From Cyanophora paradoxa CCMP329 (lineage: Eukaryota > Plantae > Glaucophyta): a stretch of DNA of 64,000 nucleotides. The stretch is from positions 28,604 through 92,603 of the forward strand of contig QPMI01000031.1 in the NCBI GenBank assembly GCA_004431415.1, in the 5' to 3' direction. The notes under the pieces are model-generated. The model was not told the DNA's origin. It ran no database searches and worked only from the letters and a program-made list of their open reading frames with translations. This document shows, one piece after another, positions 36,130-62,102 of this stretch. Numbering within the stretch: position 1 is the first letter of the stretch; every line of letters starts with the position of its first letter. The translations under genes were made by a program, and so were the position numbers.

Positions 36130-36131
<2 letters not shown>

Positions 36132-39169: not shown

Positions 39170-39807
39170 CTAGGATCCGAAAACGGTCGCCAGGAAGGGC
39201 GCGTGCTCGACTTCTGGGATCACCGAATCCCTCGCGACGTAGTACAGATCATCCGGGGATGGCCCTGGACTCGACCTCTGTGCACGCGCAAGCGTGAATT
39301 CGCGAATGCCGCATCATGATCAGAAATCGAGGGAAGACGGAAAGATATCTTGCACCGGCTCGAAGTACTCGGCAAAGAACTCGAGGTAAATGAAGCACCG
39401 ACTTGCTGGGTCGTATCGATACATCATCAGCGCATCAGGGTGCGCGTGGTATGTGCTGCGGACGAGTTCACGGTACGCAGCCTCCAGAAGATCTGTCTGC
39501 CACGTCTCTGAAACATAGATCTTCAATCTAACAGGCCCTGCGCTGTTTAGATTAGGGCACAAGCTTAAGGCATCGATGCAACCGTGGTCGCACCTGTCAT
39601 ATCAGTGATGCCCACCGGAAGGGGCCGGCAGTCCCCGAGAACGCGCACCTCGACAGAGCTGCCCGCGTTCTCGAGCCGCGATCGCGGCGCGTACAGAGCA
39701 ATCAGCGCTTCCGACTCGGCGACCTGCTCTTCTGTTGGCTCTGGTACTGGTGGCGCCGACCGCGGCTTCCGTGAAGTAACGAGCTGTTTTCGAATACGTT
39801 TCCCCAT
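39170..39807 (-). CDS. H3-tail-mimic family, copy A (3 exons)
   Basis: MGKRIRKQLVTSRK...PTEEQVAESEALIALYAPR...VEVRVLGDCRP|GPVRLKIYVSETW...YRYDPASRCF|PGPSPDDLYYVAR. Introns 39538-39593 and 39278-39355. Confidence 0.7.
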
Positions 39808-40316
39808 GCGGTAAGCATCGATCTCAGCTACTTTACAAACGAACTACGAGCGCCAAGTTGGTGGTCTCGAGCTCGAGACCGATGGCCGCGTACCGAACGC
39901 TCAGACCGAGCGCCGCCGAGGTAGCCGGCGGTGCTAAAGCCTCTAGCTAGCTAGATCGCGTGCTCTAGCTAGTTCTCCGACCGCCGGGTGCCGCCGTTGG
40001 AGCCTTGCTAGTGTGGTGGTCGGACGGGTACCCCCTGCGCGTAGTTCCCCCGGGCAAAGTCGCCGGGGCAAAGTCGCCGGGGCAAACTTGCCGGGGCGAA
40101 GTCGCGGTTTCCGGAGCGCCGGATCTGGAGCTGTGTTCTGCTAGCGTCCGAAGTGCTGTCGGCGTGGCAAGCGGTCAAAGTGCTGTCGGCGTGGAAGCGT
40201 GGCACGTGGCGCTCGAAAAGGTGCGCCGGATGCCTTCTTTCCGCATCCATGGCCATGGCGGGGTTAAGCTGCGCGTGCGTCCGTGCGGCCTCCCTTGACA
40301 GATGCGTCTCTCAGGG

Positions 40317-41200
40317 ATGGATGCACACGAGGAGACGAAACGCGAGTTCGAAGAGAGCGGCCAGGAGCGTGCGGAGAAACGCCAGCTGGAGACTTTCCAA
40401 GACGCCGGGGCGAACTTTCCGGAGCGAAGTCGCATGAGCGCTATTAAGCGCCCGCGTGCCGGAGATGCGTATGATGCGAAGGACGCAAAGGATGAAGTAC
40501 GCGCGGTCACACTTCATATCGCTACATCCAGCGTGCGTCTGCTCGCTCGCGCTTCGAATTCTTTGCTCGCTCGGCCACAAATTTAAACCACGCGCGCAGG
40601 AGATGCCCGTGGTCACTCTCGAAATCTCCAGCCCCGCCTGCATCGTCGTGCGGCCCGCCCGCCGGCGCCCTCTTGCTCGTTTTCTCAGACCAGCCGGCTT
40701 GCCATTGGCACAGGACCCGGAGCAGAGCACCTTCAAGCCCAAGCAGCGGCTGCCGGCAGAGGGGCTGGCCATCATCGAGGCCACCCTGCGTGCCCACCAG
40801 CCCCGCACGGTCGCATTGCGGCTTGAGAAGTGCGCGCGGCTCCCGAGCGCCGCCTCGTGCACTAAGTGCAGCCCGCAGCGCCCGCCTCGAGGACATTCCG
40901 GCATCGCTGCAGGATATCCTCGTCGAGAAGGTTGCGCACATCCACCTCGTCGGCGAGACCACGCTGCACCCGTTCCCAGAGGAGAACGCAGAGTCGGCCC
41001 TCGTCTATGCTACTATGTCGGACCTTCGCAAGCGTGGGCTGCTCACGATGACCATGTCGCCCGAGGTGCGGCACGGCCATGGCCAGCTAGCGCCCTCCCT
41101 TTCCTCGACCCCGCCCATCTGCAACCCAGGTACCCTGGCTCGTGGACCCCCTCAAGTTCGTTTGCGGCAAGTTGCCACCCTACAACAAGATTTTCCAACG
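40317..41200 (+). CDS. Hypothetical multi-exon protein, divergent partner of copy A
   Basis: Start MDAHEETKREFEES is homologous to MNAHEETKRKLEES at 43807. Downstream exons are protein-like; end uncertain. Confidence 0.45.
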
Positions 41201-42815
41201 GTTTAACACCTTCATGGAGCACATCTACGGCCCCTTCCTGTGAAATCAATCAGGGCAGGCACTCGTTATGCACTACGGCGCCGACATGTAATGCGCTACC
41301 TCAGTAGCTCTGAAACCCTGACTTCAATTAAATAGTGCACGCCTCCGCCTCGCCTATCGCCGGAGTCGACATTAGCAGTTGACGACGCTCAAATGGCAGG
41401 CGCGCGCTTTAGGCGAGAAAGCGCCATCGCTGAGCTACATGAAGCTCTCCACGCGTACATTCATGGGTTGCCGCTGCCCACAAGGGAGCCGACAAGTCGA
41501 CAACCGGCATCTTCGATGACAGGTGCATGCACATGCAGTTTTGCGGTCAAACCAGAATTGAGGAGAAACAGATCAAAAACCAAACCAGAACCAAGCTCGC
41601 CAAGATGTTCGAACCAGGGTGAAAGTGTCCAAATGGATTCCTGGTGCGAGGGTATCCGGGATTAGCTATGTGTCACTTGCAGTGATGTGTTCGGCATCGA
41701 TACCGGTATATTCGGATCCAGGGTATTGATTGAGTTTCCAGCTCAATCGCGAGCGTCTGCAGCTGGCATGGCTTATGTGAAGGCAGCACAGAAAACCCAT
41801 CGTGACATTCTTGTGCATGGTACACTCAAGATCTAAATATCGCGCGCAGTGATGTGTTCGGCATCGATACCGGTATATTCGGATCCAGGGTATTGATTGA
41901 GTTTCCAGCTAAATCGTGCGCACACATACATATGTTATTGAGTCCGTTCTGCTAATCCTTATAATCTCTGCGAAATGCACTTGCAGTTTGCGAAATGCGA
42001 GAGCGCAATCCCAAGTTCTTCGAGAGCCTTGAAACAAAGTAGTTTGAATTACACAGCTCTCTCGTCAAGAACTGCTCCACGTGCACCAGCACAAGACGAG
42101 AAGCACATGTTGGTGTCGCATGCAGGTAAAAACCATTGCACGTTAATCAACACATGAATTAATTGAATGTATACGCAGGGTTTCTATTCGCTGTTCCCTC
42201 TTATGCAGTACGTACACTACCAGGAATCTCGATAAATATAGCCAGCGAACAGATCTAGAGCGAAGCTTACAGACGGTATATCTTTCCAATAGACTATTAC
42301 CATCCGGACTTAAGCATTTCCTTGCCTCCCCAAAACTCTATTGCTAGAATAGTTATAGCAATCAGAAGGTCAGGTACATATGCACGCAGACATGCAGCTT
42401 GTTAAAGATCCGGCCGCGGAGGTAAGGCTCCTAGGAAACGGTACAGGTAGAATTTGTAATGTAGAACTTAGGTAAGGCTTGGTAGCCCGAGTGTATACGT
42501 AGTGGTATCCTGTTCGTGTCGTAGATTTGTTGTGTAATATGATGTGTTAAATATATTTGAATCGTTGTGTAAAGTTTCGGATTTCCAAAATTCGTGCTGC
42601 ACTACGGCGCCGGCTTCGACTTGGATCCGAGACGAATGCGACCAGCATGACTACTATATAGTTCACGTCTCCTGCTACTCAGAATTCGAATTCGAGAAAA
42701 CAATACAGCAATCTCTGTGCAGAAGAATCTGTGTTTGGCTAGTGCGCATGGCGTCGGCGACCACGAATAAGATGCAGCTGCGGACCCGTACTAGGTCCTA
42801 GGGGATTTGCACTGG

Positions 42816-43444
42816 CTAGGATCCGGAAACGGTCGCCAGGAAGGGCACGTGCTCGATTTTCGGGACCACCTCATGCCTCGCGACGTAGAACAAATCATCC
42901 GGGAATGGCCCTGTACTCGACGCCTGTGCACATGCACGCGTGAATTCGGGAATGCCGCATCAGAAATCAAGGTAAGAAGCAAAGATCGCTTGCACCGGCG
43001 GCTCGAAGCAACGGCTTTCTGGATCGTACCAATAGAGCGCAAGCCCGCTAACATTGCCTACAGAGTTGCATTCGCAGTCCAGGTCGAAGTAAGCCTGGAT
43101 CAGAAGGTCTGTCTGCCACGACATAGAAACATCTATCCTGACGCGCACTGGCCCTGCCTGTTGAGATCAGGGCACACAATCAGGGGCAACGATGCCGGGT
43201 TGCAATTGCACGTGTGCACCCGTCTTTTCAGTGACGCGTAGCGGGGAAGGCCGGCAGTCACCGAGAACCCGCACCTCGACTGAGCTGCCCCGTGCACGAG
43301 CCGCGGTCGTGGCGCGTATAGAGCAATCAGCACTTCCGACTCTGCGATCTGCTCTGCTGTCGGCGGCATGCGCAGCTGTCCCGCTGTCACTCCTGACTTC
43401 CTTGCAGCTTTGGTAGCGAGCTGTTTTCGAGGTACTTTCTGCAT
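42816..43444 (-). CDS. H3-tail-mimic family, copy B (apparent frameshift near 43290)
   Basis: MQKVPRKQLATKAARKS gives 14/15 identity to H3 K14-S28, followed by the family domain. Confidence 0.72.
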
Positions 43445-43806
43445 TCTGGAACGCAGTCCGACAGCGAGCGAACCGAGCGCCGCCGTCTTTGGAGCCTTGC
43501 TGGTGCGTGGTCGAACGAGTACCCCCGGCAGGAAGTTCCCCCGGGCAAAGCCGCCGGGGCAAAGTCGCCGGGGCAAAGTCGCCGGAGCACTGTCGCGGTT
43601 TCCGGAGCGCCGGATCTGGAGCTGTGTTCTGCTAGCGTCCGAAGTGCTGTCGGCGGGGCAAGCGGTCAAAGTGCTGTCGGCGTGGAAGCGTGGCACGTGG
43701 CGCTCGAAAAGGTGCGCCGGATGCCTTCTTTCCGCATGCGCACCCATATATAGCGGCCTTGCGCGTGCGTCCGTGCGGCCTCCCTTGACAGTAGCGTCTC
43801 TCAGGG

Positions 43807-44697
43807 ATGAATGCACACGAGGAGACGAAACGCAAACTCGAAGAGAGCGAACAGGAGGTTGATTATGAGCTTGAGACGGAGGAAAGCGGCCCGGCGCGTG
43901 CGGAGAAACGTGCGCGAGATGAGGCGTCGCGGCGGCAGCTCGAGAAGCAAGCGTCAGCGGAAGCGGTGGCGGAGATTCATCGACGTCTGCGGAAGGCTGA
44001 GGAGCGGGCTGCAGCCGCCAAGAACGACGCAAGAGCTCTCAGCGACGACGAAGAAGTGGAAGAGCGGCCAAAGGAGGTTCCGTGTCGTACCTGTGTCGAG
44101 AACCCATCATCCCCACTGTGCATATGCGCCATCATCCTGGGTATCGAAAGTGCCAGCACTTTGCACGAACTCCCTATGGACGTTCGGCCCTTCGCTAATT
44201 TGGCGCTTCGGATTGCCAAGCTCCACCGGCAGTCGCGGGCCTTCGACATCCTCCCCCAGTCGGGCGAGGACAGCGATCGCGAAGGAGAAGGTGAGGACAC
44301 GAATTACTGCACCACCCTGATTGAATCTCTGCCGTCGGAGGGGGAGGGGAATCTGGACCTGAACAGTGCGCATGGCCTTCTGTTTTAATTTACCCCGAGA
44401 AATTTTGCTTTCACAGAGCCAGTGATCATGAGCACAGGGGGACTCTGGGAGGACATCTGTATGGTCACCCTCGAAGGTTTTCAAGTGGTGAAGAGCCCGC
44501 TGCGCATGTTTCAGCTCTGTGATGGTGGTTTCCGCGTTTGCGATCCTCTTCATCCGTCCGTGGATGAAGCGCTTCGCGACCTCTGCGGACTCTGCCTCAG
44601 CAACAGCGACCTCGAGTTCTTTAGGGACATTTCCAAGCGCCTGAAAGAAAAGCAGGCCACTGAACAAGCACGCAAGCACATTTTGCATGACTTTTGA
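43807..44697 (+). CDS. Hypothetical 2-exon protein, divergent partner of copy B
   Basis: ORFs 43807-44388 and 44422-44697 join across a GT-AG intron. Charged N-terminus and a CxxC...CxC cluster. Confidence 0.55.
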
Positions 44698-45083
44698 CAT
44701 CTTGCATGTACCTTTGAACAAGCACGCAATAGTATACTGCAGCTGAAGCTTGAGCACCTCAACCTCGGAACCAACCTCAACGGGGCCGGGGCAGGGGGGG
44801 GCACGTAATTGTATTCGGAAACTTTAACTCTTCGATGGTTTTCGCATACATAGTTCTCTGGAGAATTCCAACTCTTCGATTTATGCGATCGCGGCCGCGG
44901 CAGCCATGCCCCAAGGCGCTCTGAATTCGAATTCGAGAAGACAATACTGCTACCAATCTCTGTGCACAAGAATCTCTGTTCGGCTAGCTTGCATGGCGCC
45001 GGCGGCCACCGCTAGCGTGCATGGCGCCGGCGTGCAATTCGAATAAGATGCAGCTGTCGGACCGCTAGGGGCCTTGACACTGG

Positions 45084-45723
45084 CTAGGATCCTGTAACGG
45101 TTGCCAGGAAGGGTGCATGCTCGACTTCCGGGATGATTTCCTTCATTGCCACGTAGAACAGGTCATCCGGGGATGGCCCTGGACTCGACGCCTGTGCACA
45201 TGCACGCGTGAATTCGGGAATGCCGCATCAGAAATCGAGGTAAGAAGCAAAGATCGCTTGCACCAGCGGCTCGAAGCACCGGCTAGCTGGGTCGTACCGA
45301 TAGAGCGACAGCTCGCGGCGATCAATGGGCACCGGTGTGCAGCGCAATTCCCGGTACGCTTGGGCCAGAAGATCTTTCTCCCACGTCTTTGAAACATACA
45401 GCTTGATTCGCACAGGCCCTGCGCGGTTGCAATTAGGGCGCACTGGCAGAGCAACGATGAACCGGACACATGTGCACCTGTCATTTCAGTGACGCGTGGC
45501 CGAGAAGGGCGGCAGTCCCGAGAACGCGCACCTCGACAGAGCTGCCCTCGAGCTCGTTCTCGAGCCGCGGTAAACGTCGCGGCGTGTATAGAGCAATCAG
45601 CGCTTCCGACTCTGCGACCTGCTCCGCTGTTGGCTCTGGATCGGGTACGAATCGTGAAGTAGGCGGTGCTTTCTTTGGTCTGGGTCTAGTGCCGAGAACT
45701 TTGCGGGGAGCTTTGCTTGACAT
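45084..45723 (-). CDS. H3-tail-mimic family, copy C (possible frameshift)
   Basis: MSSKAPRKVLGT...PTAEQVAESEALIALY...VEVRVLG; GPVRIKLYVSKTW...LYRYDPASRCFEPL. Confidence 0.65.
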
Positions 45724-46051
45724 TGCTTCTAGAGATGCGCGGCCGCAACGTTAACCCCAATGCCTTAATGTTTACCCCCCGGTGGGATTACCCCCTGGGC
45801 ATACTGACCGTGACTTCGTTCGCGATTCAGCTCTGTGATGGTGGTTTCCGCGTTCGCGATCCTCTTCATCCGTCCGTGGATGAAGCGCTTCGCGACCTTC
45901 GCGAAATCAATGCCGATACATTAAATCGCGACGAAAATTCGAATTGACAAAACGAAGTACAGCATTCCCTGTTCAAATATCGTGCATGGCGTCGGCGGCC
46001 ATGAATTCCAATAAGATGCAGCTGTCGGGCCGCTAGGGGCCTTGGCACTGG

Positions 46052-46682
46052 CTAGGATCCGGAAACGGTCGCCAGGAAGGGCGCGTGCTCGACATCCGGT
46101 ATTACCGAATTCCTCGCCACGTAGACCAGGTCATCCGCGAATGGCCCCAGCGGACTCGACGCCTGTGCACATGTTCGCGTGAATTCGCGAATACCGGATC
46201 AGAAATCGAGGTAAGAAGCAAAGATCGCTTGCACCAGCGGCTCGAAGCACCGGCTAGCTGGGTCATACCGATACAGATCCAAAGTGCGGAAATCGATTAC
46301 GTACGCATGACAGTTCAGGTCCATGTACGCACGGGCCCGAAGAACTCTCTGCCACGACATTCGAAAGTTTGAAATATCTATCGTGACTCGCACAGGCCCT
46401 GCGCTGTTGCGATTAGGGCTGTTGCGAGGCAAAGATGCAACCGGGTTGGACCTGTCATTGAAGTGACGCGTAGCGGGGAAGGCCGGCAGTCACCGAGAAC
46501 GCGAACCTCGATAGAGCTGCCCTCGTTCTCGAGCCGCGGTCGCGGCGTGATAGAGCAATCAGCGCTTCCGACTCTGCGATCTGCTCTGCTGTCGGCTGTC
46601 GGGACTCTGTCGCTGCTGACTTCCGTGAAGCTTTGGAAGCGAGCTGCTTGCTGCTTGCTGCTGCTTCGTCGCCGCGCTGCAT
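46052..46682 (-). CDS. H3-tail-mimic family, copy D (possibly pseudogene)
   Basis: KQLASKASRKSA...PTAEQIAESEALIAL plus the family domain, with frameshifts. Confidence 0.6.
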
Positions 46683-46989
46683 GTTCGAAATCCGCAGGAA
46701 TGCGCAGGCGCACCGTGATCTACTGCGCGCAGGCATGCGCAGGCATGAAATCATGAGCGCCAGACTCGATCTACTCAATCTGCTGGGTGCCGCTTTTGGA
46801 GCCTTGCTGGTGCAGTGGTCGGACGGGTACCCCCCGGCAAAGTAGTTCCCCCGGGCAAAGTCGCCGGGGCAAAGTCGCCGGGGACACTTGGAGCGAAGAC
46901 GCGAGGAAAGCTCCAGTACGCAAATTTAGAGGTATGCAAACCCGCCCGAACCGTGGAATCAACCATTTGAACGCACTGCCGCATACGCA

Positions 46990-49687
46990 GGTCAAAACCT
47001 CGTCCGGAGCGCCCTGCAGCGGAGCACCTCGGGTTTAAAGCTCCGGTTCTCACAAGTAGAGGTAGGCAAACCTGCAGATCCGTGGAATCAACCATTTGAA
47101 CGCAGCGCGGCACACGCAGGTCGAAACCTCGGCCGAAACCTCTTGCAACTCCGAGCTCAAGCGGGTACTTGGGGAGAAGCGAGAAGCTCCCGCAGTAATG
47201 CACACGCAAAGGCTGTTCACTCGAGCCCACGCACTTGCAGATGTGCGCCCGTGCCTGTGCTGTGTGAATGCACGTGGACTTGCAGCTGAGTGTGCAACAG
47301 GTTGAGAACACGTTCAGAGCCCTCCTTTTGGATTCGAAGAACACTCCGCTCTTCATTCGTCCGAAGTGGCTTTTCGGTTCGCCGAAGGAGCAGGGAATAT
47401 CGTTCCTTGGAATCGCGTCACCCAATTTCCGGATATGCATTGACAGTACCTTCCTCGCATCGGACAACCACAGAGCAACTTTGGTGCCTCTGTTTGATCC
47501 AAGCATCGTCTACTGCGGGGTGTGGAGTAACAGCACGGAGCACGTCGAAAGGATTCGTAAAACTCTTGATATCCAGTGGCCGTCACTTCGGGCGATCGAA
47601 ATCGACGACCTAGCCACCGCAGCGAAGCTGGACGGAACCTTGCAGAAAGACAGAAGACAAAAAGGTCTCAAATCCGGAATCCAGGATCTTTCTACGGAAT
47701 TTTTGCGTAAGGCGTTCGAGAAACCTGAGGATTTCAGATTCTTCGGGACTGGCTGGGACAGCGCCGAAGTGGACGAGACGAGGCTGGCCTTCGCTTTTCG
47801 GGAATTGGAAACAGGCATCGGGATTATCAAAGTCATTTTAAAAAGGGTGGGGTTGAAGCTGACTTCTGCAAAGTTTTCGCTATCACTATCTATCGCTCTC
47901 GCAAACTTCCGCTATCGTTTAGTATCCGGAGACGAGCAGGAGGTTTGTCCTCGACGTCTGTGATAAAGAGGTGAGCTTGCTTTACTTCTGCTTTTTCAAC
48001 CCGGCTGTTCTGCTGTTAATTATAATCGCAGGATGCACGTGTTGCTCTGGAGCTGAGCAAGTCTGAATGCGTCGACGGTGGAAAAGATGCATCCGCTCCG
48101 ACACTGACACCTTCGATGCAAAAAGAAAAGGATGCTTCGAACAAACCTTTCCCTCCCATTTCATTCGTCCCAGCGCAAGGTGCCTCAAATCTCCAGTCGG
48201 AATGGTCTTCAACCTATGGAGGCTGTCACAAACACACTGGTGACACGATGAAAGACAGTCTATCTATCCCTCGGATAAGTTGAATTCCGGCTCGCAGGTA
48301 CCGGTTCTCAGAATGCCGAACTTCGGGATCCGGAGGAGATTCGATGCTTGCAGCAGCAGGTGAAATCACTTCAGGATGATAACGCCTTACTTCGACAAGC
48401 GAAAGAGCGCGTCGACGGTAAATGCCTTTTTTGCGTTCAGCTATAACTGCTTTCAGTTAATTAGTATCCGCGCGTAATCCCCCGCTGCAGCCCCCGACTG
48501 CAGCGGCTGCAAGGAAAACGCTTTCCTGGTCGCCCAGCTGCAGCGGCTGCAAGGTCGAATCGCTCAGGGGCGCCTTCGTTCATTCTTCTTTTGAAACGTC
48601 TGCAGGCCTCCAGAATGAGAATGCTTCCCTGCTCGCCCAGCTGCAACGGCTGCAAGGTCGAATCGCTCAGGGGCGCCTTCGTTCATTCTTCTTTTGAAAC
48701 GTCTGCAGGCGTCCAGCATGAAAATGCTTCCCTGCTCGCCCAGCTGCAACGGCTGCAAGGTCAAATCGCTCAGGGGCGCCTTCGTTCATTCTTCTTTTGA
48801 AACGTCTGCAGGCGTCCAGAATGAGAATGCTTCCCTGCTCGCCCAGCTGCAACGGCTGCAAGGTCAAATCGCTCAGGGGCGCCTTCTTTCATTCTTCGTT
48901 CGAAACGTCTGCAGGCATCCAGAATGAGAATGCTTCCCTGCTCGCCCAACTGCAGCGGCTGCAAGGTCGAATCGCTCAGGGGCGCCTTCTTCCAGTCTCC
49001 TCTTGAAACGTCTGCAGGCGTCCAGAATGAGAATGCTTCCCTGGTCGCCCAACTGCAGTGGCTGAAAGGTCAAATTGCTCGGGGGCGCCTTCTTTCATTC
49101 TTCGTTTGAAACGTCTGCAGGCATCCAGAATGAGAATGCTTCCCTGGTCGCCCAGCTGCAGCGGACCAATGGTGTTTTTTTAGACTGCTTTTCGATTTAG
49201 GTCTCGATTTGACCGTTTCCCGTGCGTGTAGCTGTGAATGCAGCTCCCCAAGCGCAACTGCAGCGGCTGACCGGTTTCCACTTCGCCGTTTTCTCGGAAT
49301 TGGGATTTCTGAGTGACTGATAATGACTGCAGCTATGAATGCGGGTCTCCAATCTCAGAAGAAAGCTCTTCGTGGTACGCTATCTCACTCCTTCGCGGTA
49401 CATTCAATTTCCGGCCTTGAGTATGGGTATCTTAGATGAAGTCACGACGCTTCGTGGTACGGCGGTTTTCCTCCCCGATGATTTTATGAACGTCGCGGTA
49501 CATTTATGTTTACACCTCGTTCGCGATTCTTTGTAAATGTCAGCTGAAATTGCGACACTGCGAGGTATGGCGGTTCCCCTCGGATGCATTTTTATTTACT
49601 CCGATGCTGATATTGTGATCAGCAAAAATCGACGACCTGGAGGATGCTGAATTCCAGCGCCTGTTCGAAGGCGTGCTCAATATTTAG
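46990..49687 (+). CDS. Degenerate DnaQ/WRN-type 3'-5' exonuclease-like domain + coiled coil built from repeated mini-exons
   Basis: EIDDLATAA...SGIQDLSTEFLRKAFEKP....GWDSAEVDETRLAFAFRELE resembles the WRN-exo/RNase D C-half (DL..GL..L...L.K...S.W....L...Q..YAA.DA) with exoIII Y/D replaced. Start uncertain. Confidence 0.5.
48510..49165 (+). repeat. Tandem 103-bp exon+intron repeat (~6.5 units)
   Basis: GTCTGCAGGC recurs at 48598, 48701, 48804, 48907, 49010 and 49113. Each unit is a 51-nt exon (GVQNENASLLAQLQRLQ) plus a 52-nt GT-AG intron. Confidence 0.92.
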
Positions 49688-49908
49688 ACGTGTGATCTTC
49701 GTTTAAATCACAATTGAATTTCAGTATTGCACTGAACCTGCTGTTCAAATACGATTTAATCGGGAAGCTTCCACACAGTGCATACTCAGGCCACGGTCAT
49801 AGAGGAAGGAGGGGGGGGGAAGAGAAGGGGGGGGGAGTGCCGAACTTACCGCGGCCGGCAAAAAAAGCCGGCTTGGCGTGCAGTGCTGCCACAACTCGAA
49901 GCTGCTGG

Positions 49909-50540
49909 ATGGCGAAAGTGAAAGAGAGAGCGCGTATGTCTACAGGCGGAAAAGCTCCTCGAAAGAACCTCGCACAGCGGCCGCGGCCGCCGACAGCGGA
50001 GCAGGTCGCGGAGTCGGAAGCACTGAATGCTCTTTACGCGCCACGACCGCGGCCCGAGAACGAAGGCAGCTTTGTTGACGTACACATTCTCGGCGACTGC
50101 CGGCCTGCCCCGCTACGCGTCACTGCAATGACAGGTGCAAATGTACACCGATTCACCGTTGCTCTGCCAGTGTGCCGTGAACTCAACAGCGCATGCGCAG
50201 GGCCTGTGCGAGTCACGATCCGTGCTTCGGACTCGAATGCGTGGAAGAGCGAGCTACTGGACCTGGCGTTCGAGGAGCTGCACTGCAGTACGCATGTGCA
50301 CCTCGAGGAGCTGGTGCTGTATCGATCTCGGTACGACCAAGCAGGCTGGTACTTCGAGCTTCCGGTGCAAGCGATTGTTGCGTCTTACGGTGATTTCTGA
50401 TGCGGATCTCGCGAATTCACGGGTGCGCGTGCACAGGCGTCGAGTCCGGGGCCATCCCGGGAGATCTGTATTACGTCGCGAGGAGGGATATCATCCCGGA
50501 AGTCGAGCATGTACCTTTCCTGGCGATCAATCAGGAATAG
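49909..50540 (+). CDS. H3-tail-mimic family, copy E, carrying K9M (1-bp frameshift near 50458 in the last exon)
   Basis: [22 protein letters not shown] aligns ungapped to H3 [21 protein letters not shown] with Met at position 9 (ATG 49936-49938). Introns 50135-50200 and 50365-50436. Confidence 0.78.
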
Positions 50541-50639
50541 TTGCAAGTGCCGGCATCCCTTCCCTAGTCCGGATTTCGTAGCCAAAAATACGCGGATGTA
50601 TTATACGTATACGCGGCGGCACGGATACAACAGGAGCGC

Positions 50640-51749
50640 CTAATTGCCAGCGCTGTAGTGCAACACGAGCGCCTCAAATTCTCTCCTACGGCGCTCTATG
50701 TAGTCTCCATCTAAATCTAGATCTAGAGGGTTGCCTCGCATTTCGCGCTCTGCGAAGTCCAGCAACCAGATCCCGCACTAGCGAGCGTGGTCAGCCGTTG
50801 CCACTGGCCACGGGCGGGAGTGAAAACAGCACTAACCTGATGGCCGTCATGCTGCACTGCTCGCTGTACCGATTGGATGACGTCAATTTCATGTTTCAAG
50901 AGAATTCTTGCGAGCTTGCGCGGAGCCTTCGCGCCAATGCTGTCGTAGTATCTGCAGACCTTGCCGTCGATAACCAAGAGTGTCCAGTGTCGTCGGTTGT
51001 TGACGGGGACGAGAGCGCGTGTGCTGGTGCCATTCAAGTGCTCGAGTAACGCTTCTATGTAGGATTCAGCGTCGTGGAGGGCGAGCGGATGTGCGATGAA
51101 CCAATTCTGTGTGACTGCCTCCTTGGCCGCCGCCGCGCGGATGCAAACGAGCGCGCTCTCGATTGCGCTCGATGACAGCCACAAATCCCGGCTGCAGCTG
51201 AAGCTGAGCTGATGCCGAACTAGATCTGCGCTAACGATCTTCGGCCGCGCCTTGACTGTGCCCAGCTCCTCCAACTCAGAAGAGGGCTCTGGGTCACCAC
51301 ACTGCAGCTGTCTTTGCCGCCGTATGCGCTTCTTTAAAACTACAGGAGAGGGCTTCGGATCTGAATCATCACATTGCATATCCCGCCGGCGCTTCGCTGC
51401 CTTCGCGGAGGCCATCTGCGAGGATCCGGAGAACGGACGACCTAGGCCTGCAGGGGAACAAGCCCGCATGAGTTCCAGCGGCGAACTGTAAAGGCAGAGC
51501 ACGAAGCGGGCGTGCACATTCACGAATGCCGAAGTCGACGGCTATATCTATCAACGTTCAACGTTCAGCGCCGTTGATCATGACAGGCCACGCGGCGCCC
51601 GAGTCCACGTCAGCGAGGCTGCCGGCGATGGCTAAGCCTCCGGCTAGCTGTTTTACGCGCTCTAGCTCGATCTCCGACCACCGGTCACCGCCTGAAAGCT
51701 TCGAGACTTGCTGGCGGCATTGAGCGCACGTGTACCCCACTAGTCCCAT
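50640..51749 (-). CDS. Ulp1/SENP-like C48 cysteine protease (SUMO/NEDD8 deconjugase)
   Basis: WLSSSAI...LVPVNNRRHWTLLVID...YYDSIG...QHDGHQ|CGIWLL gives intact His-Asp-Gln-Cys catalytic motifs once the intron at ~50778-50836 is removed. 5' exon uncertain. Confidence 0.85.
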
Positions 51750-51906
51750 CCCGGGCCGTCCGGGCCGTCCCGGACGAGACCAAGATCCAGCAATCTAGCG
51801 TCTGCACAAGGCAGCGCGGCGCGAGCTCGAGGAGCGCGACTCCCCAGTTTCCAGTTTTCCGACAGGATCTAGCGACTCTCGGAAGTTTCGAGGCGCGCTC
51901 GCTCTA

Positions 51907-52542
51907 ATGGCGAAGACAAAACAAAAGGCGCGAAAGTACAACGGATCGATTCCTCAGAAGAAAATGCCTACCAAAGCTTCAAGAAAGCGGAAGTCAGAGC
52001 CGGAGCCCGACCCGTCAAAGAAGCAGGTGCCCGAGAACGAGGGCAGCTCTAAAACTGTCGAGGTGCGCGTTCTCGGCGACTGCCGGCCTGCCCCGCTACG
52101 CGTCACTTCAATGACAGGTGCATGCCCGGTTGCATCGTTGCTTCTGCTAGTGTGCCGTGATCTCAACAGCGCATGCGCAGGGCCTGTGCGAGTCACGATC
52201 CGTGCTTCGGACTCGAATGCGTGGAAGAGCGAGCTACTGGACCTGGCGTTCTTGGAGCTGCACTGCAGTACGCATGTGGATGACCGCGGCACTCTGGCGG
52301 TGCATTGGTACGACCCAGCAAGCCGAACCTTCCAGTCGTTGGTGCAAGCGATCTTTGCGTCGTATACGTACGGTGATTTCTGCTGCGGATCTCGCGAATT
52401 CACGGGTGCGCGTGCACAGGCGTCAAGGGCGCAGGGGCCATCCCCGGATGATCTGTTTTACATTACGAGGAATACAGTTGATCCGGCCGTCGAGCATGTA
52501 CCTTTCCTGGCGGATCCGGACGCAGTGATAGAGCTTGACTAG
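51907..52542 (+). CDS. H3-tail-mimic family, copy F (K4, K9 and K27 equivalents retained)
   Basis: MAKTKQKARKYNGSIPQKKMPTKASRKR resembles H3 1-27, followed by an intact family domain. Confidence 0.75.
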   Translation: MAKTKQKARKYNGSIPQKKMPTKASRKRKSEPEPDPSKKQVPENEGSSKTVEVRVLGDCRPAPLRVTSMTGACPVASLLLLVCRDLNSACAGPVRVTIRASDSNAWKSELLDLAFLELHCSTHVDDRGTLAVHWYDPASRTFQSLVQAIFASYTYGDFCCGSREFTGARAQASRAQGPSPDDLFYITRNTVDPAVEHVPFLADPDAVIELD

Positions 52543-52647
52543 CCCATGGCCGTGGCTGGAATTGCGTTTGCATGTTCGTGCTCTCATGTATGAATTGTTC
52601 ACTTCGAGTGACTGTCTAGCTGAAATGATTGACAATTGCATGATCGA

Positions 52648-54750
52648 TTACACGATAATAATGCATTTCGAGAGGGACTGCATCTCTAAGATACGATTTT
52701 TTATCGTCTTGATCTCATTGTCGACATTATCGCTCTGTGCTTTGATCAGAGCGTTCTTCTGGCGCACATGATCGAGAAGTGACGCAAGCGCTGTTTCAAG
52801 AACGTCGAAGGACGTCGCTTGCAATTGCTGGTTGAGTGTTCCTAGGGCACGCGTTGCGTCGTAGTTGACATCGGTTTGAGCACCAGAAATCATGAGTGCC
52901 ATCTGCGCAGCAGGAAGCTCATTTATGGCACCACAAATCTGGAAACTGCAAAAAAGAACGTCTGCGAAAGAGAGGTGCAGACGAACCTTCTTATTAAGCT
53001 CATGTAGCTGTGCGAGGAGGTTAACAATACACCTTATTCTCTCTCCAAGTGCCCGGTCGAAGACAACTTCGTTGCGCAAGTAGATATCTACAAGATGCAG
53101 CTTTTCTAAGGATGGCGCCTTCTCGAACGCCCCGACCACACACTGAGCAACATATTCTGGGATTGCGCGCATTGCATCTGTTCGCTGTTCATAGCCAGTC
53201 ACTCCAACCAGGCGGAGGGTTTCCAGAGATGAGCACTGCGAAGCGATCTTCGTGATGGAGGTGACCAGCCAGTTGCGCTCGACACGTAAGACTTGTGCTC
53301 CATGAGCGTCAGAGGGTGCAAGCGGAAGGATCAGCTCGCGAAGGCTGCTGAATCGTAATGTCTTTGCGAGTTCCGCGAGACGATTCGGTGATAATTTACG
53401 GAGCTGTGCCACGGTTGCATGTGGAACTGTGCATGCCACCAGGTCCAGCGTGATAAGAGATTGACACTTCCGCGCTGCTGATAAGATTTGCTCGTAATCA
53501 CGCCCGTCCTCCAGCGTGAAGCGCAACGTTTGCGTGAAATTGCTTAGATACCGTTCCATCTTATTTATATTCGTGCTGTCGCTCTTAATGATGCAATTGA
53601 TGAACGAAATATGTTTGAGACAGCACGAGTCGGGAGAGCAGAAGAACTGGACGACTGGATGCGAAGCTGGGCGGATGCGAGTTGCTGTGAATTCGACATG
53701 GAGCTCCTCCGTGCATTCCCCCGCCGTATGATGCAATACCAGAGATGCCGGCCGCGGTGGGGCCATTGACGAGTCATTTTGGATGTCCCGAGGCTCGTCA
53801 GATATCTGCAATCCAAATCAGGCTGCTCGAATATAAATAGTGGCAGGTCGTGCACATTGAAAATCATGGACGCGGGCGCTGGACGAAAGAGTCCTGGGGT
53901 TTTCAGCTCTAGGCCTTCGCTTGTTAGACATCCTTTGATGATGACTTTCTTGGCACTGAAAGCCCAGTAGGAGAAGGAACCCGCAGCTTCTTGAAACATG
54001 ATGGTTTCTTGGTCGACACATAGCTCTTCGACCGTCCCAAATGACGTGTCATCAGGCCCGCAGTCACGAAAGCTGCAAATTATGAAAAACTGTTTGTCAG
54101 CTTCTGGTTCTGAATGGATTACGTAAACGAATACGTAGCGAATTTGGACTTACTGAACGGGCCCCCGAATACCTGCGTTGGTAACAGAGTTCGATACGGC
54201 TCGATGCTGGCTATTTCCTCCGTTTCACGGTGTGCGCGAAGGCTTGCGCTTGCCTTGTCGTCCAGAATAAGACGGCGAGGCGCCGTCTTCAAGATAAGGT
54301 GGACCCAGTCAAAATGAATGGCCTCAAGGTCGTCGGAACCACACCCTGTGCAGATTCCTAGGCACCGCTTGGGCTTCTCAAAGAAACGCTGTATGCTGTC
54401 CAGGAGGATTGCAAGTTTCTTAAACGTCTTTGGCTGCTTCCATAATTCCGAGGCAAAGCTGGAGGAAGCGAATTTGATGCTACCGCCATGCTCTAGGATC
54501 CACTTCGCGCGAATCCACACCCTTTCAAGCAGGAGAGCCGGAATTGTGTCAAGAAAGATGGTCGCGGTGCGGACGCGCTTCAAGCCATTGCCCTGTTCCA
54601 CGAGAATCCTGTAGAAGCGCCGGCTGCTACTCCACAGAGCTCGCACGGACTCGAGGCGTTCATTAGGAACCATGCTGGCAATTATGGCGATGGCATCGTC
54701 TGGAAGATCATTTATCGTTATGGTTGCCTTTCTTGTCGATTCGAGCCTGT
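52648..54750 (-). CDS. F-box / LRR-like protein, multi-exon
   Basis: TINDLPDDAIAIIASM...LWSSSRRFYRIL (F-box); LITLDL, LRELIL, LETLRL, LEKLHL (LRR-like). Confidence 0.7.
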
Positions 54751-56364
54751 GCGGCGAATGTTAGAGAGGGGTTCTTTCGCTTGCTTTGCCTCCGAATGAA
54801 TATGCGTACCGCTCATCTACTTCTGGTACGGTGGCGACGTCTTTAGTAGATCCATGTGTAGGTTCGAATCCCCGCCGCAGGCTCCATACTGCAAGCCGAT
54901 TCCCTGCATTATGTGAGCCGATTTGGTCCGCGAATGCGCGTCAACGTGCATGCGCACTGCAGCTGCGCATTTGTCGGCCCAGCACGTTTTGGTGTCTTCC
55001 CAGAGTCAGCGGCCAGATCCAGACTCTCGTCCCTGCGCGCGCAGAGGACAACAATCAAGGCACGATAAACGCACCCACGCCAATATTAATACGACGCACG
55101 AGCGTTTCCTTCGTCTACGCTGCATCGCAAGTTTGAAATTTCTCAGAGGGGTACGGTAAGGATACGGTTAGGGGGTTCTAAATGGGGAAGGGGTACGAGC
55201 TACGGGATTTGCGCGGGAAGCCGTCGTTTTACTCGGAAACGCGTATTACAAGCTTTAAGTATGTCGCAGCTTGAAGACCCCATGGCCGGCCTGGTATCGC
55301 AGTCGAATCAAAGCTCTGAAGATAAGGTGCGTCGCACTCAGCGGCCAGCGGATAAGCTGCTGGCTTAAGCTAACCGGCCACGCATGCGCATGCGCAGTGC
55401 ACGACGGTGAAGCGGGCGCGGGAGGAGATCAATGGCGAGCGTGCGAGCAAAAGGCAAACTTCGGGCACAGGGAACTCCAGCGAAAAAAGGCCCTTAAGCT
55501 TGCTAAACAGTGAGCACCTGGTGCGAACACTACTCCACTCTAGATCTACGACTCGGCGAAAAGTATTCTTCATAACACGGTTTGAACGCTCGCACTTTTA
55601 GAAACAGTTTGAACACGCGCTTGATTTCACGTACGGGCTTCCCTTCACATTTCACAAGTTGATGGTGCGAATCAAATAGTAGTGATGAGTTTTCCTTGAC
55701 CGTCGGACGTCTGTGCGAACGAGTGCATGTACAGCACGACAACCAGCGGAACATTATGCGGCAGCTTCGAAGTGATGTGATGGCGCTATCAGCTAATGTG
55801 AGCCGTGGCCCGCACTCACTGATGGTCAACTCTCTGAAATGCTCGAATTCCAGGTCAGTTCTGTAATCGAAAAGGAGATCGCTGATATAAACCAACCGGT
55901 CGCCTCCGAAGAGTGTGTGCTCATGTTAAACTCTCAGCAACTGGAAAAGCTATTTCAAAGCCTCAAGAATGCTGTTATTTGTGAGATCGAATGCTGTCAA
56001 AAGCGAATGGTAAAGACAGATTTGGTGATTATATAGTCATGCCGACGTCTGTCAGTTCACGTGCGTGCACGACAGATCAAAAGGGAATTCGACGAATTCA
56101 ACCATCTTGAGAGGGAAATCGAAACCGTGAATGTGTCAATCTTAAGTCTGCAACGTCAGGCACTATCGTCGCTTAAGACCGAGGGCGGAAGTCAGGAATG
56201 AAGTAAGAAGAGATCCCATGTGCGAACATGCGACTTTGTCTTTGTATTATTTGTTGCGAGCAAGCAAAAGCTAGCTGAGTATGTAACTTGGCATATTGTA
56301 GCGCTAGCCAAGCGAGCTCGATAATCTTACATACTGCACACTGCACCAATTCCCTCGCTGCATT

Positions 56365-58606
56365 TTATTGATCGTGGAGAAAAGCAGTTGAATTAGAGGA
56401 TAAAAAATCGCGTAGACCCTTGTTGGTATCTATGAATTGCCCCTGGGCCAGGAATGACGTGCCGCCTCGTATTTCGACTCTCCAAAAGCAATAAAGCCGA
56501 GAAAGCGTATTTTGATGTTCGCAGAGCATGTTGACGGCTTGCGTAAGCTCCTCCAGACCAACTCTGGTACGCACAGCGATGTTAAGTTCAACATGAGCCA
56601 GTCTTGGACCCGACTCCAACAGCGCCTTCTTTCATTGATCAGAAACACGGAATCGCATTTGAATGAGTGAAACAGCGAACCCGCAAGATTTCTGCCGGAT
56701 GTGGAAAGAAGCCTTCGATGCTGAGCAGGCGAACTTTCGTTCGCATTGACCGAAGGAGGGCCATAAAACTGTCTTGGTGAAGTGTTCGGCTTTCTACATT
56801 CTGATGGTAGCGAGTGCCTAGATCTCGTACAAGCAGATCACATTGTTCGAGCGCCGGGAGTTGCTCCAAGTTCGCTCGGATTTCTTCGAAAGATACACCG
56901 ATTGCTCTGTGCACGTCTTCTGCTGGATAACTCCGCGTCTGCTGAATTGTGGGTGGAACGATGGCCCGGCACGAATGCACAGATACGCACTTCGATATGA
57001 ATTCTAACATTTTTAAGCATCGGGAGCGGTCGCAAAATTTTGAAGTGGGTCTCGCAGCCGATCTGACGTTGCCGAAGTAAGCAACTCGAACACCGAACAA
57101 CAATGCCGAATCGCACCTGAATCTCGAGACTTTCGAGGTTAGCCATTGTGCTGATACGCTCGACCGTCGACCCAGTGCTTTTATACGCAACTATCAACGC
57201 TCGCACACTTTCCGGATTGAGCGTCGAGAGCGCTGTGTCCTCCCGAACTGTGCATGATAAGCGTTGCGGGGAGAGTTTGACTATCGCGTCCTGCAGTAGA
57301 TATCGATGTCAGTAAACACTATCTGCGCTGATGGGATATTACGTGCATCTGATGCATACGTACCGCCTGATCAGCTGACAGGAAAGGCGGTGTTAACTCA
57401 ATGGTCCTCTGGCCCGCATGCTCGCATCGTACCATGGACAACTCGCGGAGCCCTTTCAAATTGACCTCAGCGGCTGCACGGAGAAAGATGGCGGCAAAGC
57501 GTTCGTATGCGGTCACTGATAACCGGCCTTCTGGATAGTTCCGCAGCGCCTTCGTGAATGCGCGTGCGACATCTAGAGTGCTGACAAATTGTTCGCTGAC
57601 TTCGTCATACAACACGTGTTCACATTTCTCCCAGTAGTCCCAGCCCTCGAAAATGACATGCACAGAATTCCGCAGAAGCTTCGCCTTTGCCACGTCCTCG
57701 ATCACATCTGAGCTCGAGGCCAGTTAGAACACCGGTTTTTTGAAGTGGAATTGATGCAATTGTCGCGATGTCTGTGCAAATTTCGCGCACCAAATATTGA
57801 CCTCAGAATACTGAAGCATAGCTTGAATGCAAATTTCCTCTCTGTTCGGTGCGAGTAGAGCATGTCGGGGAACTGCTCGAACCGGTCATGCCAAAATGAG
57901 CTGACGATGACGTTCTCGCAGCCCGCGAGTTTCTTTTCTCTGAACAGAGCTCTGACTGCGCTGAGGAGCTCGTTGGCTGCGGGCCCATTTCCACAAGATC
58001 GGAACCGTTCAGCCGGAGCACAGGCCAGTTCTTATCTTTGAGAAGCTGCGTGAAGCGTTTGTTGATGCTGAAGAACTGGTGTTTGCACGCTTCGGAGAGA
58101 TCATCGTAGACGAGCTCTAAGATGCGAACGAGGAGGCTATCCGGCATCTGGTCGAAGGGGCGGGTTGCTGCTCTGCATGCGCATGCTCCTGCTCATGATC
58201 ACGGTTTGCGCTGATGCATCGCTCAGCATCAGCGCCAGCTTGCCCGAAAGGGGGTGGTTCGCAAGCGCTGGCACCTCTCTGTCGCTGGCTCCGCGCCCGC
58301 AGCTTGGAGCAAGTTTGAAGCGGCTGCCGTGTCTTGTGCAACCGGCTGCTCTGCCCACTGCAGCAGCCGCTGATCATGAAGCTGAAGGACCTCCGCTTCT
58401 GCAGCGGACGCCAGCTGCAAGTCTGCTCCTGGGGTGTCTGCAGCTGCGCAACCAAGCTCGCAACCAAGCAACACAAAGATGTGAGAGTACGCACCTTGTA
58501 ACGCTGCAGCCCTATTAGTCGCATGTTCAGGATCGCTCTCCTCCTCGTTCACACGCGCGCGTTTCGAGTCGTGCGCGTCTCGCGCGGCGTTCGCCGCGCA
58601 ATCCAT
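56365..58606 (-). CDS. F-box protein, multi-exon
   Basis: FDQMPDSLLVRILELV...FFSINKRFTQLL (F-box-like), with several downstream protein-like exons. Confidence 0.6.
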
Positions 58607-58729
58607 CGCCGGTTGCAATGCTGCGCTACCGCGCTACCGCGCTACCGCACGAGCTACCGCTGAGCGGCTAGTTGCAACGGAAGGAGGGTACACGGCTCTC
58701 AGCCACGCCCAGCTCGCAGCACGCGAGCG

Positions 58730-60613
58730 ATGGCGGAACGCTCAGCGAAGCGAGCACGTGCAGAAGCGCCAGTGGAATCTGGCGCGGTGCTTCGTTCCAT
58801 CTCCGACCTGCCCGACGGCGTCCTTGGCAGTGTTTTCAAGTCAGTCTCGCTGGTGCAAGCCTGGCCGCTTCGAGAAGTGTGTAGGTGCGTCCAGGCTCGC
58901 TCGCCGAGTCGACTTGGACCCTCCGGATCCAACCCGCGCTGCCACGCAGGCGTTGGAGGAGCGTGATCGAGGGCACAGCGTGGGACTGTATCGAGCTGCG
59001 GTCGAATGAGGATTTCGTGTTTCAGCATCTCGTGTCGCTGCTCCGGAGCGAGAAGATCAAGCTCGCTTGCGGCGCGCATACGCGGGTCACCGTTGGAATG
59101 CATGCGCAGAGCGAGAGCAATTTCGGCTTTGTCGCATTGGCCTCTGCCGTGCTGGCGGCCTGCAACAAGGACGGCAAGGTGGCAGAGGCAGACGTGTGCT
59201 TCTTGGCAGAACACATCAACAGCCTCGACAGCGTCGTGCATGCTTTCATCCTGGCAACCCTCGCAGCTCTCCGGCCGCAGCGTGCGGCGCGCAGCGCTCT
59301 GGAGAAGCTTGCCATTCGCCTAGAGACGCTGGAGTACGAGTTCTTTCGGATACTCCTAAGGGCGACCTTGTCAACCTACGTATTGACCAGAGGCAAAAGG
59401 CAACCGCTGAGGACTTGCAAGCGTCCTTGGAGTCGTTGAGCAGTATTCGGTCCCTCAAGCTGATGCCGAACGCGTTTCCCCTGGACAGCACAGCAGCAGC
59501 AGCGATCGCCAGCAGCCTCCCAACCTTCAGTCTATCCACTTCTCGGCAAACGACTGCAGCGTGCTTGCAGTCCTCGCGACCTTATCAGCTCTGCGTGACG
59601 TTGTCATCAACTGGTTCACCCCTGAAAGATTCCCACGGACCCTTCAGAGATCGGCGACGCCTTCTCGACTCTAGCTGCTGGCCCTGCTGGAAAGTCGCTG
59701 CGATCAATTGTCCTCGATCCTGATCCCGTGTGAGTGCTCTGGCAACTGCGTGCGGTTTGCCAAAAAGCCCAGGTCGGCCGATTCCTCGACGCAGTAAATT
59801 TTTCTTTCCGCTCAACAACACTGGTCTACACTCCATCGCGAAATTTCCTTTCCTCGAGGAAATATGTATCGACGTGCGCGTCCATATGAGCTAAGTTATG
59901 CTCTCGTCACTAACTCCTAACTGCGTGACGCAGCTGAGCAGTGACAAACTGGAGTCTGCCGACCTGGCGGCATTCCAGTCGACAAGCTTGCGAGATGTGA
60001 GTGTGAGACTTCACGTTGTGAAGCGTGCAATGGTCGAGCGCTTGGGAGCGCTCGAGTCCGCCATTGCGAGGTTCTCGAAGCTGTCTTCACTGACATTAAA
60101 TCTGGCAATCCCGAAGGCGGTGCAGACGGTGCACCGGCTCTAGATCTGTGCAGTCATTCCCGCACTGATGATGATCTCTCGGATCTGCACAGACATGCAC
60201 CCGCGGATGATGAGGCTATTTCACGCTTCCTCCGCACGTGCAAGTCGTCTCTGCGCGGATTGTTCCTCTATCTCAGGCGGCCTCTCAGCGCGTCGGAGGC
60301 AGAGTCTATATCTCTCTGCACAGAGCTGAAGTCCCTGGATGTGTCCTGCAATATTCGCTCCGTCGCAGAGATCGGGCCGCTGCAGGTGCGGCGCCGGCGT
60401 ATGCATTATGAAGCAAAGAAGTTTATTTATTTAGCAAAGCAAAGAAGTTCATTTATTTATACTTCCTCTACAGGGACTGGACGTGTGCCTCGACAAAGTA
60501 CCGTCCGCGAAATTTCACATTGCGATTTCGCGAGAGCCACGAGAGCCGGGCTACGAGAGCGTCGTCAAGCAGCTGCTGCAGGATTTTTTGCCGCGCGCCA
60601 CGATATCGACTAG
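58730..60613 (+). CDS. F-box / LRR protein, multi-exon
   Basis: SISDLPDGVLGSVFKSVSLVQAWPLREVCR|RWRSVI (F-box); LEKLAI, IRSLKL, LSSLTL, LKSLDV repeats. Confidence 0.75.
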
Positions 60614-60629
60614 TATTCTTACGTATAGC

Positions 60630-62100
60630 TAGTGTACAATGAGCAATCATGACTCCGGGGAAATTGAAGCCGGGCCCGGGGCTCATGAATGATATCGATA
60701 ATGATCATCATGGCATCGGACCACGACTTGCGATCGGAGCAGGCAGGGCAGCCAGGCCCGGGGCTTATGATCATATCATGACTCATGACGAGCCCAGACC
60801 CGGGCCTCATGATCAGCTCTTGCTCCCACACTAGGCAAGCCAGGCACGCCGCCCAAGGTCCCGTCAGCTCCGCCCCAAGTTCCCCGCTGGCTCAGCCCAA
60901 GACCCCCGGCCGCCCTGTGCGCCCGCGTAACCCCCCCCCCCCCCCCGAAGCCGGTCCGCGTACCCCCCATCCCCCCAGGCATGCGGCCCCGCCCCCCAGC
61001 GCCCGCCAAGGCCCCCCGACCCTGCCTGGTGCCGACTCCCCCGCCAAGATCCCCCTTCCCATTCCACCCCCCGACCCCCAGCGCCCGCCAAGGCCCCCCC
61101 GACCCTGCCTGGTGCCGACTCCCCGCCAAGACCCCCCTTCCATTCCACCATCCCCGGGGGGCTAGTTAGAACTCGGAAGGCAGTTTGGGTAGGTCCAGCC
61201 CTCCTAGCAACGAATGTCCTGGCCCGGCTATATAATAGCCTATATTTACCAGCGTTCAGGTCGCATTTGTGGTCTCTGCCAATACAACAATGCCCCGTAT
61301 GGCTATTTGGAAAAAAGCTAGTGTACAATGAGCAATCATAACTCCGGAGAAATTGAAGCCGGGCCGGGGCTCATGAATGATATCGATAATGATCATCGGA
61401 CCGTACCACGACTTGCGATCGTGACATCGGCTACAGTTGAAGGCAGGCCTAGGGCAGCCAGGCCGGGGCTTATATGATCATATCATGACTCATCATGGCA
61501 TGACGAGCCCAGGCCCGGGCCTCATGATCAGCACCGTACATGCGCGTGGCACGGCGGCAGTGGCAGAGGCGAGGACTCCAGGAGCTAGAGCCCTCAGGGC
61601 GCCCGGCCTCGGAGGCGCCGGCCCCGGGGCGAGGTACCGGTGGGATCACAGCTGCAGGCCCTGAGGCAGGGCAGCCAGGTCCGGGGCTCATGATCATGTC
61701 ATGTCTCGTAATGAGCACTGACTCAGTGAACATGTGGCAGTGCGGCATTGGCAGACTTTGAGATCTTTAGGAAGCCTTGAAGGGAGCCCGCGGAGGCCCC
61801 TGGGGCCCAGGCGGGGAAAATGTGACTTCCGCTGCAGGGAGGGCAACCAAGCCCGGGCCCGGGCCTCATGATCATGAGCATGATTCGTGATCAGCACCGT
61901 ACATGCGCGTGGCACGGCGGCAGTGGCAGAGGCAAGTAGCCCCGGGGCGCCGGCGGCGAGGTGCGATCACATGTACAGCCGCTGAGCTGCAGGAAGGGCA
62001 GCCATGCCCGGGGCCCGGGCTCATGATCAAGATCACGACCCGTGCCCGGCCATCGGAACGTTAACTCCAGTACATGATCATGATTGGTCCTAGTACACTG
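60630..62100. mobile_element. Non-autonomous TIR element (MITE-like) with a duplicated left end (60630 and 61319)
   Basis: Left TAGTGTACAATGAGCAATCATGA versus right end reverse complement CAGTGTACTAGGACCAATCATGA. Internal GGCCCGGGCCTCATGATCA-type repeats. No TSD found. Confidence 0.6.
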
Positions 62101-62102
62101 TT

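Follow-up and report, generated by a model that had tools for sequence, protein, structure and literature searches.

The gene that starts at position 49,909 of the window (the whole 64,000-nucleotide stretch of DNA analysed) raises the question of why a protein without a histone fold should begin like histone H3, and whether the methionine that it carries in place of lysine 9 could make it an inhibitor of H3K9 methyltransferases. The start of the gene had been described as H3 1–21-like, as having Met in position 9 and as lacking a histone fold behind it, and alignment, phmmer and Pfam confirmed this description. The gene, hereafter copy E, was aligned without gaps to a wild-type H3 tail, for which the tail of the contaminant locus L123 served as the reference (tail and next 60 residues read). 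It was identical to H3 at 15 of 21 positions (A1, K4, A7, R8, S10–K18, L20 and A21) and departed from it by R2K, T3V, Q5E, T6R, K9M and Q19N. Apart from M9, residues 7–18 were those of H3, including K14. In a phmmer search against PDB sequences, copy E matched H3 tails over residues 1–24 (E = 3e-4) and nothing past residue ~24–33, and Pfam found none of the histone fold that lies behind the tail of an oncohistone or H3 variant. The stretch A7–A21 kept 13 of 15 H3 residues while the 5' part of E and the other copies of the gene drifted, which suggests selection on that stretch.

Self-comparison of the window revealed five further tailed paralogs within 12 kb of E, so that the caveat of a single K-to-M change in one copy was correct for the methionine, present in one of six copies, but not for the gene, which is not alone. 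Copies A, B, C and D lie on the minus strand, E and F on the plus strand, and two intron positions are common to the family (Table 1). Local duplication is shown by the intron positions shared among the six tailed copies, together with the tail-less relative. These fusions of an H3 tail form a tandem gene family that had not been described, and in one member the K9M context is genuine; the genes appear to be lineage-specific chimeras. The Pro-rich, acidic linker of E is common to A–D and mostly deleted in F. In the tail-less gene, the linker that joins its two domains (38176–38200, plus strand) bears a faint likeness to H3 24–32, with Phe near K27, which may be due to chance. An upstream element with a 14-bp repeat, ~90% identical between copies, precedes A, B and D (39806–40312, 43473–43857 and 46782–46903); a further copy at 37124–37622 has no gene body behind it.

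The tails differ in which part of H3 they retain. K18 was present in all six tailed copies (copy D having been anchored on this residue), L20 in five, K14 and R17 in four each, K23 in just two or three and K9 in one. Position 9 was Met in E and Lys in F, and was lost or untranslated in the other four. Judged by these six sequences, the constant part of the family is H3 14–20 and not K9M, since K18 is kept in six copies and L20 in five, while K9 is mostly changed or lost. Pooled pairwise dN/dS, calculated from pairs that are not independent, was 0.66 in exon 2 and lower, 0.38, in exon 3. The exon 2 lengths of all domain copies were congruent modulo 3, exon indels were in frame, and splice sites were kept throughout. 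By these measures, exons 2 and 3 are under coding constraint. The original prediction proposed a search for paralogs and for purifying selection; six tailed copies were found and the dN/dS of the domain is below 1. M9 itself is not conserved in the family, and F, the nearest paralog, has Lys.

Table 1. Features of the tailed gene family, its tail-less relative and their surroundings (positions are those of the window; A to F are the tailed copies).
Feature	Position	Strand	Remarks
Lower-GC island holding the family	36131..64000		GC 0.49–0.60 vs 0.59–0.83 leftward; left edge at (TA)32 run
Tail-less relative with two tandem domain copies (H, G)	37700..38825	+	Found by self-comparison
Paralog A	39170..39807	-	Tail from about H3 12–14 to ~22; no frameshift
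Paralog B	42816..43444	-	Near-perfect H3 14–28, K27 kept; -1 shift in exon 1 G run
Paralog C	45084..45723	-	H3 14–20 core (mainly 13/14–22); -1 shift in exon 1 G run
Relic of H3 codons 7–12	45725..45742	-	Just upstream of the start codon of C, out of frame; ATC at codon 9
Paralog D	46052..46682	-	H3 18–29 retained; -1 shift in exon 1, outside homopolymer
Copy E, start Met and H3 1–21-like tail	49909..49974	+	15/21 identical to H3
Copy E, Met codon at H3 position 9 (after Met removal)	49936..49938	+	ATG; single change from AAG, the codon of copy F
Copy E, remainder of exon 1	49975..50134	+	Pro-rich acidic linker, then first strand(s) of the orphan domain
Copy E, intron 1	50135..50200	+	GT-AG; 53–66 nt in paralogs, not always 3n, stops in some copies
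Copy E, exon 2	50201..50364	+	Orphan-domain core: strand, helix, two strands
Copy E, probable intron 2	50365..50436	+	GT-AG; in-frame TGA 50398–50400; second GT at 50390
Copy E, exon 3	50437..50540	+	Last domain strand and short C-terminus; C run 50456–50458
Ulp1/SENP-like protease gene	50643..51523	-	Between E and F; Pfam C48 E = 0.018 (below cut-off), SENP2 E = 8e-4
Paralog F	51907..52542	+	Diverged H3 1–27 tail, K9 kept; frame open through both introns

Intron 2 had unusual properties. It was a multiple of three long in all eight domain copies (72–84 nt), its indels were always multiples of 6 nt, and its conservation (86%) exceeded that of intron 1 (69%) and of exon 2 (~65%). The in-frame TGA was present in seven domain copies and replaced by TGC in F. 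Recent intronization, a retained-intron isoform or read-through are possible explanations. An in-frame UGA opposite Cys in a homolog is a feature of selenoproteins, and this feature was found here. Selenocysteine read-through was nevertheless considered less likely than an intron: no SECIS element was detected in the 3' UTR with Rfam or with a simple pattern-and-fold scan, the GT-AG borders occur in all copies, and the stretch was left unmodelled in the first AlphaFold model. No conserved RNA structure was found in the intron 2 stretch.

Frameshifts of -1 occurred in four of the six tailed copies (B, C, D and E), three of them as homopolymer shortenings, while A and F were open. The C run in the last exon of E has three C where the paralogs have four. 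This shift is probably a homopolymer assembly error, because G runs in B and C are likewise one base short, and the overall pattern suggests errors of a long-read assembly. In addition, use of the donor GT at 50390 would leave the frame of E open even with the shortened C run. The 1-bp frameshift that had been raised as a caveat is therefore present in the sequence, but it weighs little.

The domain behind the tail was an orphan at the sequence level. No homologs were detected in Pfam, PDB sequences, metagenome contigs, viral contigs or exact look-ups, nor by a word-index search covering proteins of 116–369 amino acids. A profile search of 1.8 billion proteins returned two matches, both rejected as spurious sums of short repeats: an ORF of seven tandem repeats and a SIR2-TPR protein. 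The searches were made with exons and stop-free pieces, and structure prediction was carried out on the continuous unspliced frame of F aligned with stop-free pieces of the paralogs. Model 1 (mean pLDDT 54) consisted of a strand, a helix, two strands, an unmodelled stretch at intron 2 and two further strands, and its best Foldseek TM-scores were to the ubiquitin-fold domain (UFD) of UBA3. For model 2 (mean pLDDT 41), the top Foldseek ranks were held by the plexin RBD, RA, FERM F1 and TBCB. Both are low-confidence models of unspliced frames, and in both the order strand-helix-strand-strand-strand was the one expected for a beta-grasp, a fold in which a mixed five-stranded sheet holds one helix. 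The top matches of both were mostly ubiquitin-fold domains, the best with E = 0.2 and none significant. A viral fold search gave no match. Through their agreement the models give a lead to, rather than proof of, a beta-grasp (ubiquitin-like) fold. The predicted domain resembles known beta-grasp domains (RA, plexin RBD, UBA3 UFD, PB1 and ubiquitin-like) in the predicted order of secondary structure and in the top Foldseek ranks, and differs from them in having no significant structural or sequence match. As for features of ubiquitin-type modifiers, there was neither a C-terminal di-glycine nor a match to ubiquitin-family sequence profiles.

The family lies in a lower-GC island whose right edge falls outside the window. 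The window is eukaryotic and not of human origin. Its part to the left of the island is very GC-rich with short GT-AG introns, and includes what we take, by eye, to be a Nop15-like gene. As to the proposal that the island is mobile or accessory, no viral or transposase hallmark was present among about 20 island ORFs or pieces, and the only long inverted repeats of the island are the paralogs themselves. In the Ulp1/SENP-like gene between E and F, the His and Asp are located in a long ORF, and a short exon of its own, after an intron at 50836–50778, carries the putative catalytic Cys; the 5' end is undefined, and the triad is apparently complete. A further homolog search with this ORF returned no match. 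The gene upstream of E (48520–49164, plus strand) contains a 103-bp tandem repeat in 6.3 copies, which looks as if an exon-intron unit coding for 17 residues of coiled coil had been duplicated. Several orphan ORFs at 52648–64000 appeared F-box- or LRR-like by eye, with no Pfam support. A LINE-type element was found at 27052–30613 (plus strand), with an endonuclease-like ORF, a reverse transcriptase (Pfam E = 3e-19) and frameshifts, and a 488-bp fragment at 15213–15700 was identical to its 5' part.

Copy E is not unique in its K9M motif. An exact DNA scan of metagenomes for the 12-residue motif identified six contigs representing five independent loci, three of them non-histone or truncated fusions, and none of the five was homologous to E beyond the tail. 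Locus L004 (5006–7300, GCA_001563815.1) encodes a near-canonical, intact H3 with K9M in a compact, intronless four-histone cluster; its H2A and H2B are divergent, an ankyrin-repeat gene adjoins, and the source may be a protist or a large virus. An intron-containing H3 variant on a single contig (L007, 2708–3088, minus strand, Ga0265303_10033604) carries K9M and K27M with K36 kept, and has a Pfam histone fold (E = 1e-26). With K-to-M at both repressive sites in one natural gene, it is possibly more striking than E. In L005 (875–1657) and L003, found in several assemblies, a K9M tail and an internally deleted histone fold are fused to an unrelated ORF, and all five members of this cluster that retain the N-terminus have K9M. 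The ORF of L006 (650–3289, minus strand) has a ubiquitin domain and, ~270 residues on, an internal near-perfect H3 2–18 motif with K9M. It directly follows a BRCT-PARP-VIT-VWA (PARP4-like) ORF, with which it probably forms one spliced gene. Short non-histone ORFs of a gene-dense eukaryote (L008, 1341–1586, plus strand; cluster P0012–P0026; L125 and L126) end in an H3 7–21-like motif, in which position 9 was Leu in 13, Met in two and Lys in none of the 15 members listed, which are >90% identical and hence not independent. In a control set of 121 H3-like motifs from viral contigs and eukaryotic contaminants of prokaryote assemblies, position 9 was Lys in 117, His in two, Arg in one, Ala in one and Met in none. 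Against a background variation at K9 of ~3% (4/121), finding Met at five loci of a much larger collection does not have to mean enrichment. A natural class of K9 decoys is possible on these sequences. Wild-type H3 tails were also observed on ORFs without a nearby histone fold in viral_contigs (L026 and L031), so tail capture occurs on giant-virus-binned contigs as well.

Any role for M9 presupposes that the residue is real and translated in its context. A base-calling error would fit an assembly that appears to carry indel errors; M9, however, is a substitution outside a homopolymer, and the relic of H3 codons upstream of paralog C shares its T at the second position of codon 9. For this reason M9 is probably real, and an error very improbable. 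The relic matched codons 7–12 of E at 13 of 18 bases (shuffle p = 0.002, in a test chosen after the data were seen), and four of 1234 island windows were as good. At the same place, paralog D reads Arg-Ile-Ser (ATT at codon 9), by eye only. The A-to-T change may thus predate several duplications, and a hydrophobic residue at this position may be old. The 3' half of E, though, is nearest to F (84–85%), which has Lys9, so that an old change would require mosaic ancestry or two origins. Since Met is one of the eight non-synonymous outcomes a single step away from AAG, M9 can also arise by drift. Translation might instead begin at the position-9 ATG, giving a product that starts at S10 and has no R8-M9 context. 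The family does tolerate losing residues 1–11, as A, B and C begin just upstream of K14. Yet the ATG at 49909–49911 that opens the frame is the first after ~260 bases (49647–49908) without any ATG, has G at +4 and is homologous to the start of F; in B, C and D, the start codon is found downstream of the relic of codon 9 and is probably no homolog of M9. We regard this start as improbable. The idea that M9 was the ancestral start codon of A–D was dropped on the same observation for B, C and D, with A being ambiguous.

Inhibition by E is chemically plausible because nothing is missing from its SET-contact core, R8-M9-S10-T11; it also keeps G12 and K14. The preference of Clr4 is for R at position -1, S at +1 and T at +2 (PMC7700585), and E has all three around a Met at the target-lysine position of a non-histone protein. 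In the crystal structure of G9a with H3K9M, the Met fills the aromatic channel and residues 3–12 are ordered (PMC5030085). The original prediction listed the kept residues (K4, R8, S10–K18) correctly but left out the changed T3, Q5 and T6, all of which lie inside this ordered stretch. The K9M effect in fission yeast is dose-dependent (PMC5030085, PMC8167812) and requires K14 ubiquitylation in cis, being abolished by K14R in cis; K14ub tightens the binding of Clr4 to K9M about fourfold, from 1.42 to 0.34 µM (PMC8167812). As E keeps K14 and has a possible ubiquitin-like fold ~35 residues downstream, a built-in K14ub mimic can be speculated on. Copy E might then be a selected decoy of SUV39/Clr4/G9a-type methyltransferases, as proposed earlier: Met9 would enter the lysine channel in a SAM-dependent manner, K14 would be ubiquitylated or the beta-grasp would stand in for this, and the island would escape heterochromatin. 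The real K9M context, the intact Clr4-read residues and K14, and the effect of K14ub on Clr4 speak for such a role, as do the relic ATC (C) and ATT (D) at codon 9, the five unrelated metagenome loci (with one family having only Leu or Met at position 9 and one H3 having K9M and K27M) and the precedent of EZHIP, in which a K-to-M peptide with disordered flanks is enough. They are opposed by the confinement of M9 to one copy of six, with Lys in the sister copy F, by tails that erode everywhere, by the single base needed for K-to-M and by the three changes within the G9a-ordered residues. Moreover, the dose-dependent effect is known for nucleosomal H3, which a protein without the fold cannot become, the ubiquitin-like fold is unproven and shows no ubiquitin sequence similarity, and the island ORFs examined had no transposase or viral hallmark. 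We consider a selected decoy unlikely. The broader proposition that E belongs to a class of natural H3K9 decoys that arose more than once (non-histone proteins with an H3 tail and Met, Leu or Ile at position 9), and that the beta-grasp of E imitates K14-linked ubiquitin to give a one-piece K9M-K14ub mimic trapping Clr4/SUV39, is more doubtful still. Alternatively, the array might consist of decaying duplicated pseudogenes, with M9 due to neutral drift in an unexpressed copy. The -1 shifts of B, C, D and E (that of D lying outside a homopolymer), the wildly differing tails, the 5'-only fragment at 37.1 kb and the failure to find homologs in any database searched would fit decay. Three of these four shifts, however, are homopolymer shortenings such as long-read assemblies typically contain, the frames of A and F are open, splice sites are kept, exon indels are in frame and dN/dS is below 1; decay of the whole array is likewise unlikely.

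The reading that we favour, with about even chances of being correct, is that the tail serves a beta-grasp-like domain for import and docking, in a lineage-specific chimeric family. H3 14–20 is a docking site for enzymes of the acetyl and ubiquitin pathways. It also falls within H3 1–28, which is an import signal in yeast whose key lysines are K14 and K23 (PMC5677370). A small, probably beta-grasp domain would have been extended at its N-terminus by the 5' end of an H3 gene, and local duplication would then have amplified the fusion. The borrowed tail would act as a basic peptide for nuclear import and for docking of chromatin factors, centred on H3 14–20, and, to judge from the surviving residues, would carry the domain to the nucleus and to proteins that read or modify K14 and K18. 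Four copies lost positions 1–13, on which constraint would be loose, and K9 is also exchanged for R, H or A in 4 of the 121 H3-like motifs of the control set. One A-to-T change turned K9 of E into Met, and the resulting peptide could bind an H3K9 methyltransferase, although M9 appears more likely to be a tolerated variant than the reason for the gene's existence. The conservation of A7–A21 in E, the Ile9 relics in C and D, the recurrence of K9M in unrelated non-histone ORFs, the best Foldseek E-value of only 0.2 and the patchy retention of K23 count against the import and docking function. Even if nothing is inhibited, the cluster documents how a captured histone tail on an orphan domain was cut back to different segments. 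It amounts to a set of natural deletions, and the part they indicate as useful is H3 14–20.

Histone mimicry is known from viruses, for example in influenza NS1. In the literature searched, coverage of which was incomplete, no natural non-histone K9M mimic was found, and the literal motif occurred there in only two papers, in one of them as a synthetic peptide. Should H3K9 methyltransferases indeed be inhibited by E or by the unrelated metagenome proteins, these would be for K9 what EZHIP is for K27, and accessory DNA would have a simple way to evade silencing. The H3TMs (PMC8166343) share with E an H3-like N-terminus on a non-histone protein, a removable Met, a basic residue 2 and K4; they are short convergent motifs around K4, whereas the E family has a 21–27-residue piece that looks captured from an H3 gene and was duplicated. 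Engineered H3K9M, as used in S. pombe and in the G9a structure, is identical to E at residues 7–18, including K14. Copy E differs from it in the absence of a histone fold and hence of nucleosome incorporation, in R2K, T3V, Q5E and T6R, and in being natural and fused to another domain. EZHIP (CXorf67) is likewise a non-histone carrier with Met at the target lysine, Arg at -1 and flexible flanks, and its K-to-M peptide, in a disordered carrier, inhibits in cells; its 12-residue motif is absolutely conserved and its inhibition of PRC2 has been demonstrated (10.1101/585729). The motif of E is copied from H3 itself, would target K9, and is known from sequence in one of six paralogs. No orthologs of E were found in other species by the profile search of proteins or in metagenome contigs, and the paralogs do not show the EZHIP pattern of a Met kept while the rest diverges. 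Because conservation within the family fails in this way, we do not class E as an EZHIP-like inhibitor, despite the similar chemistry.
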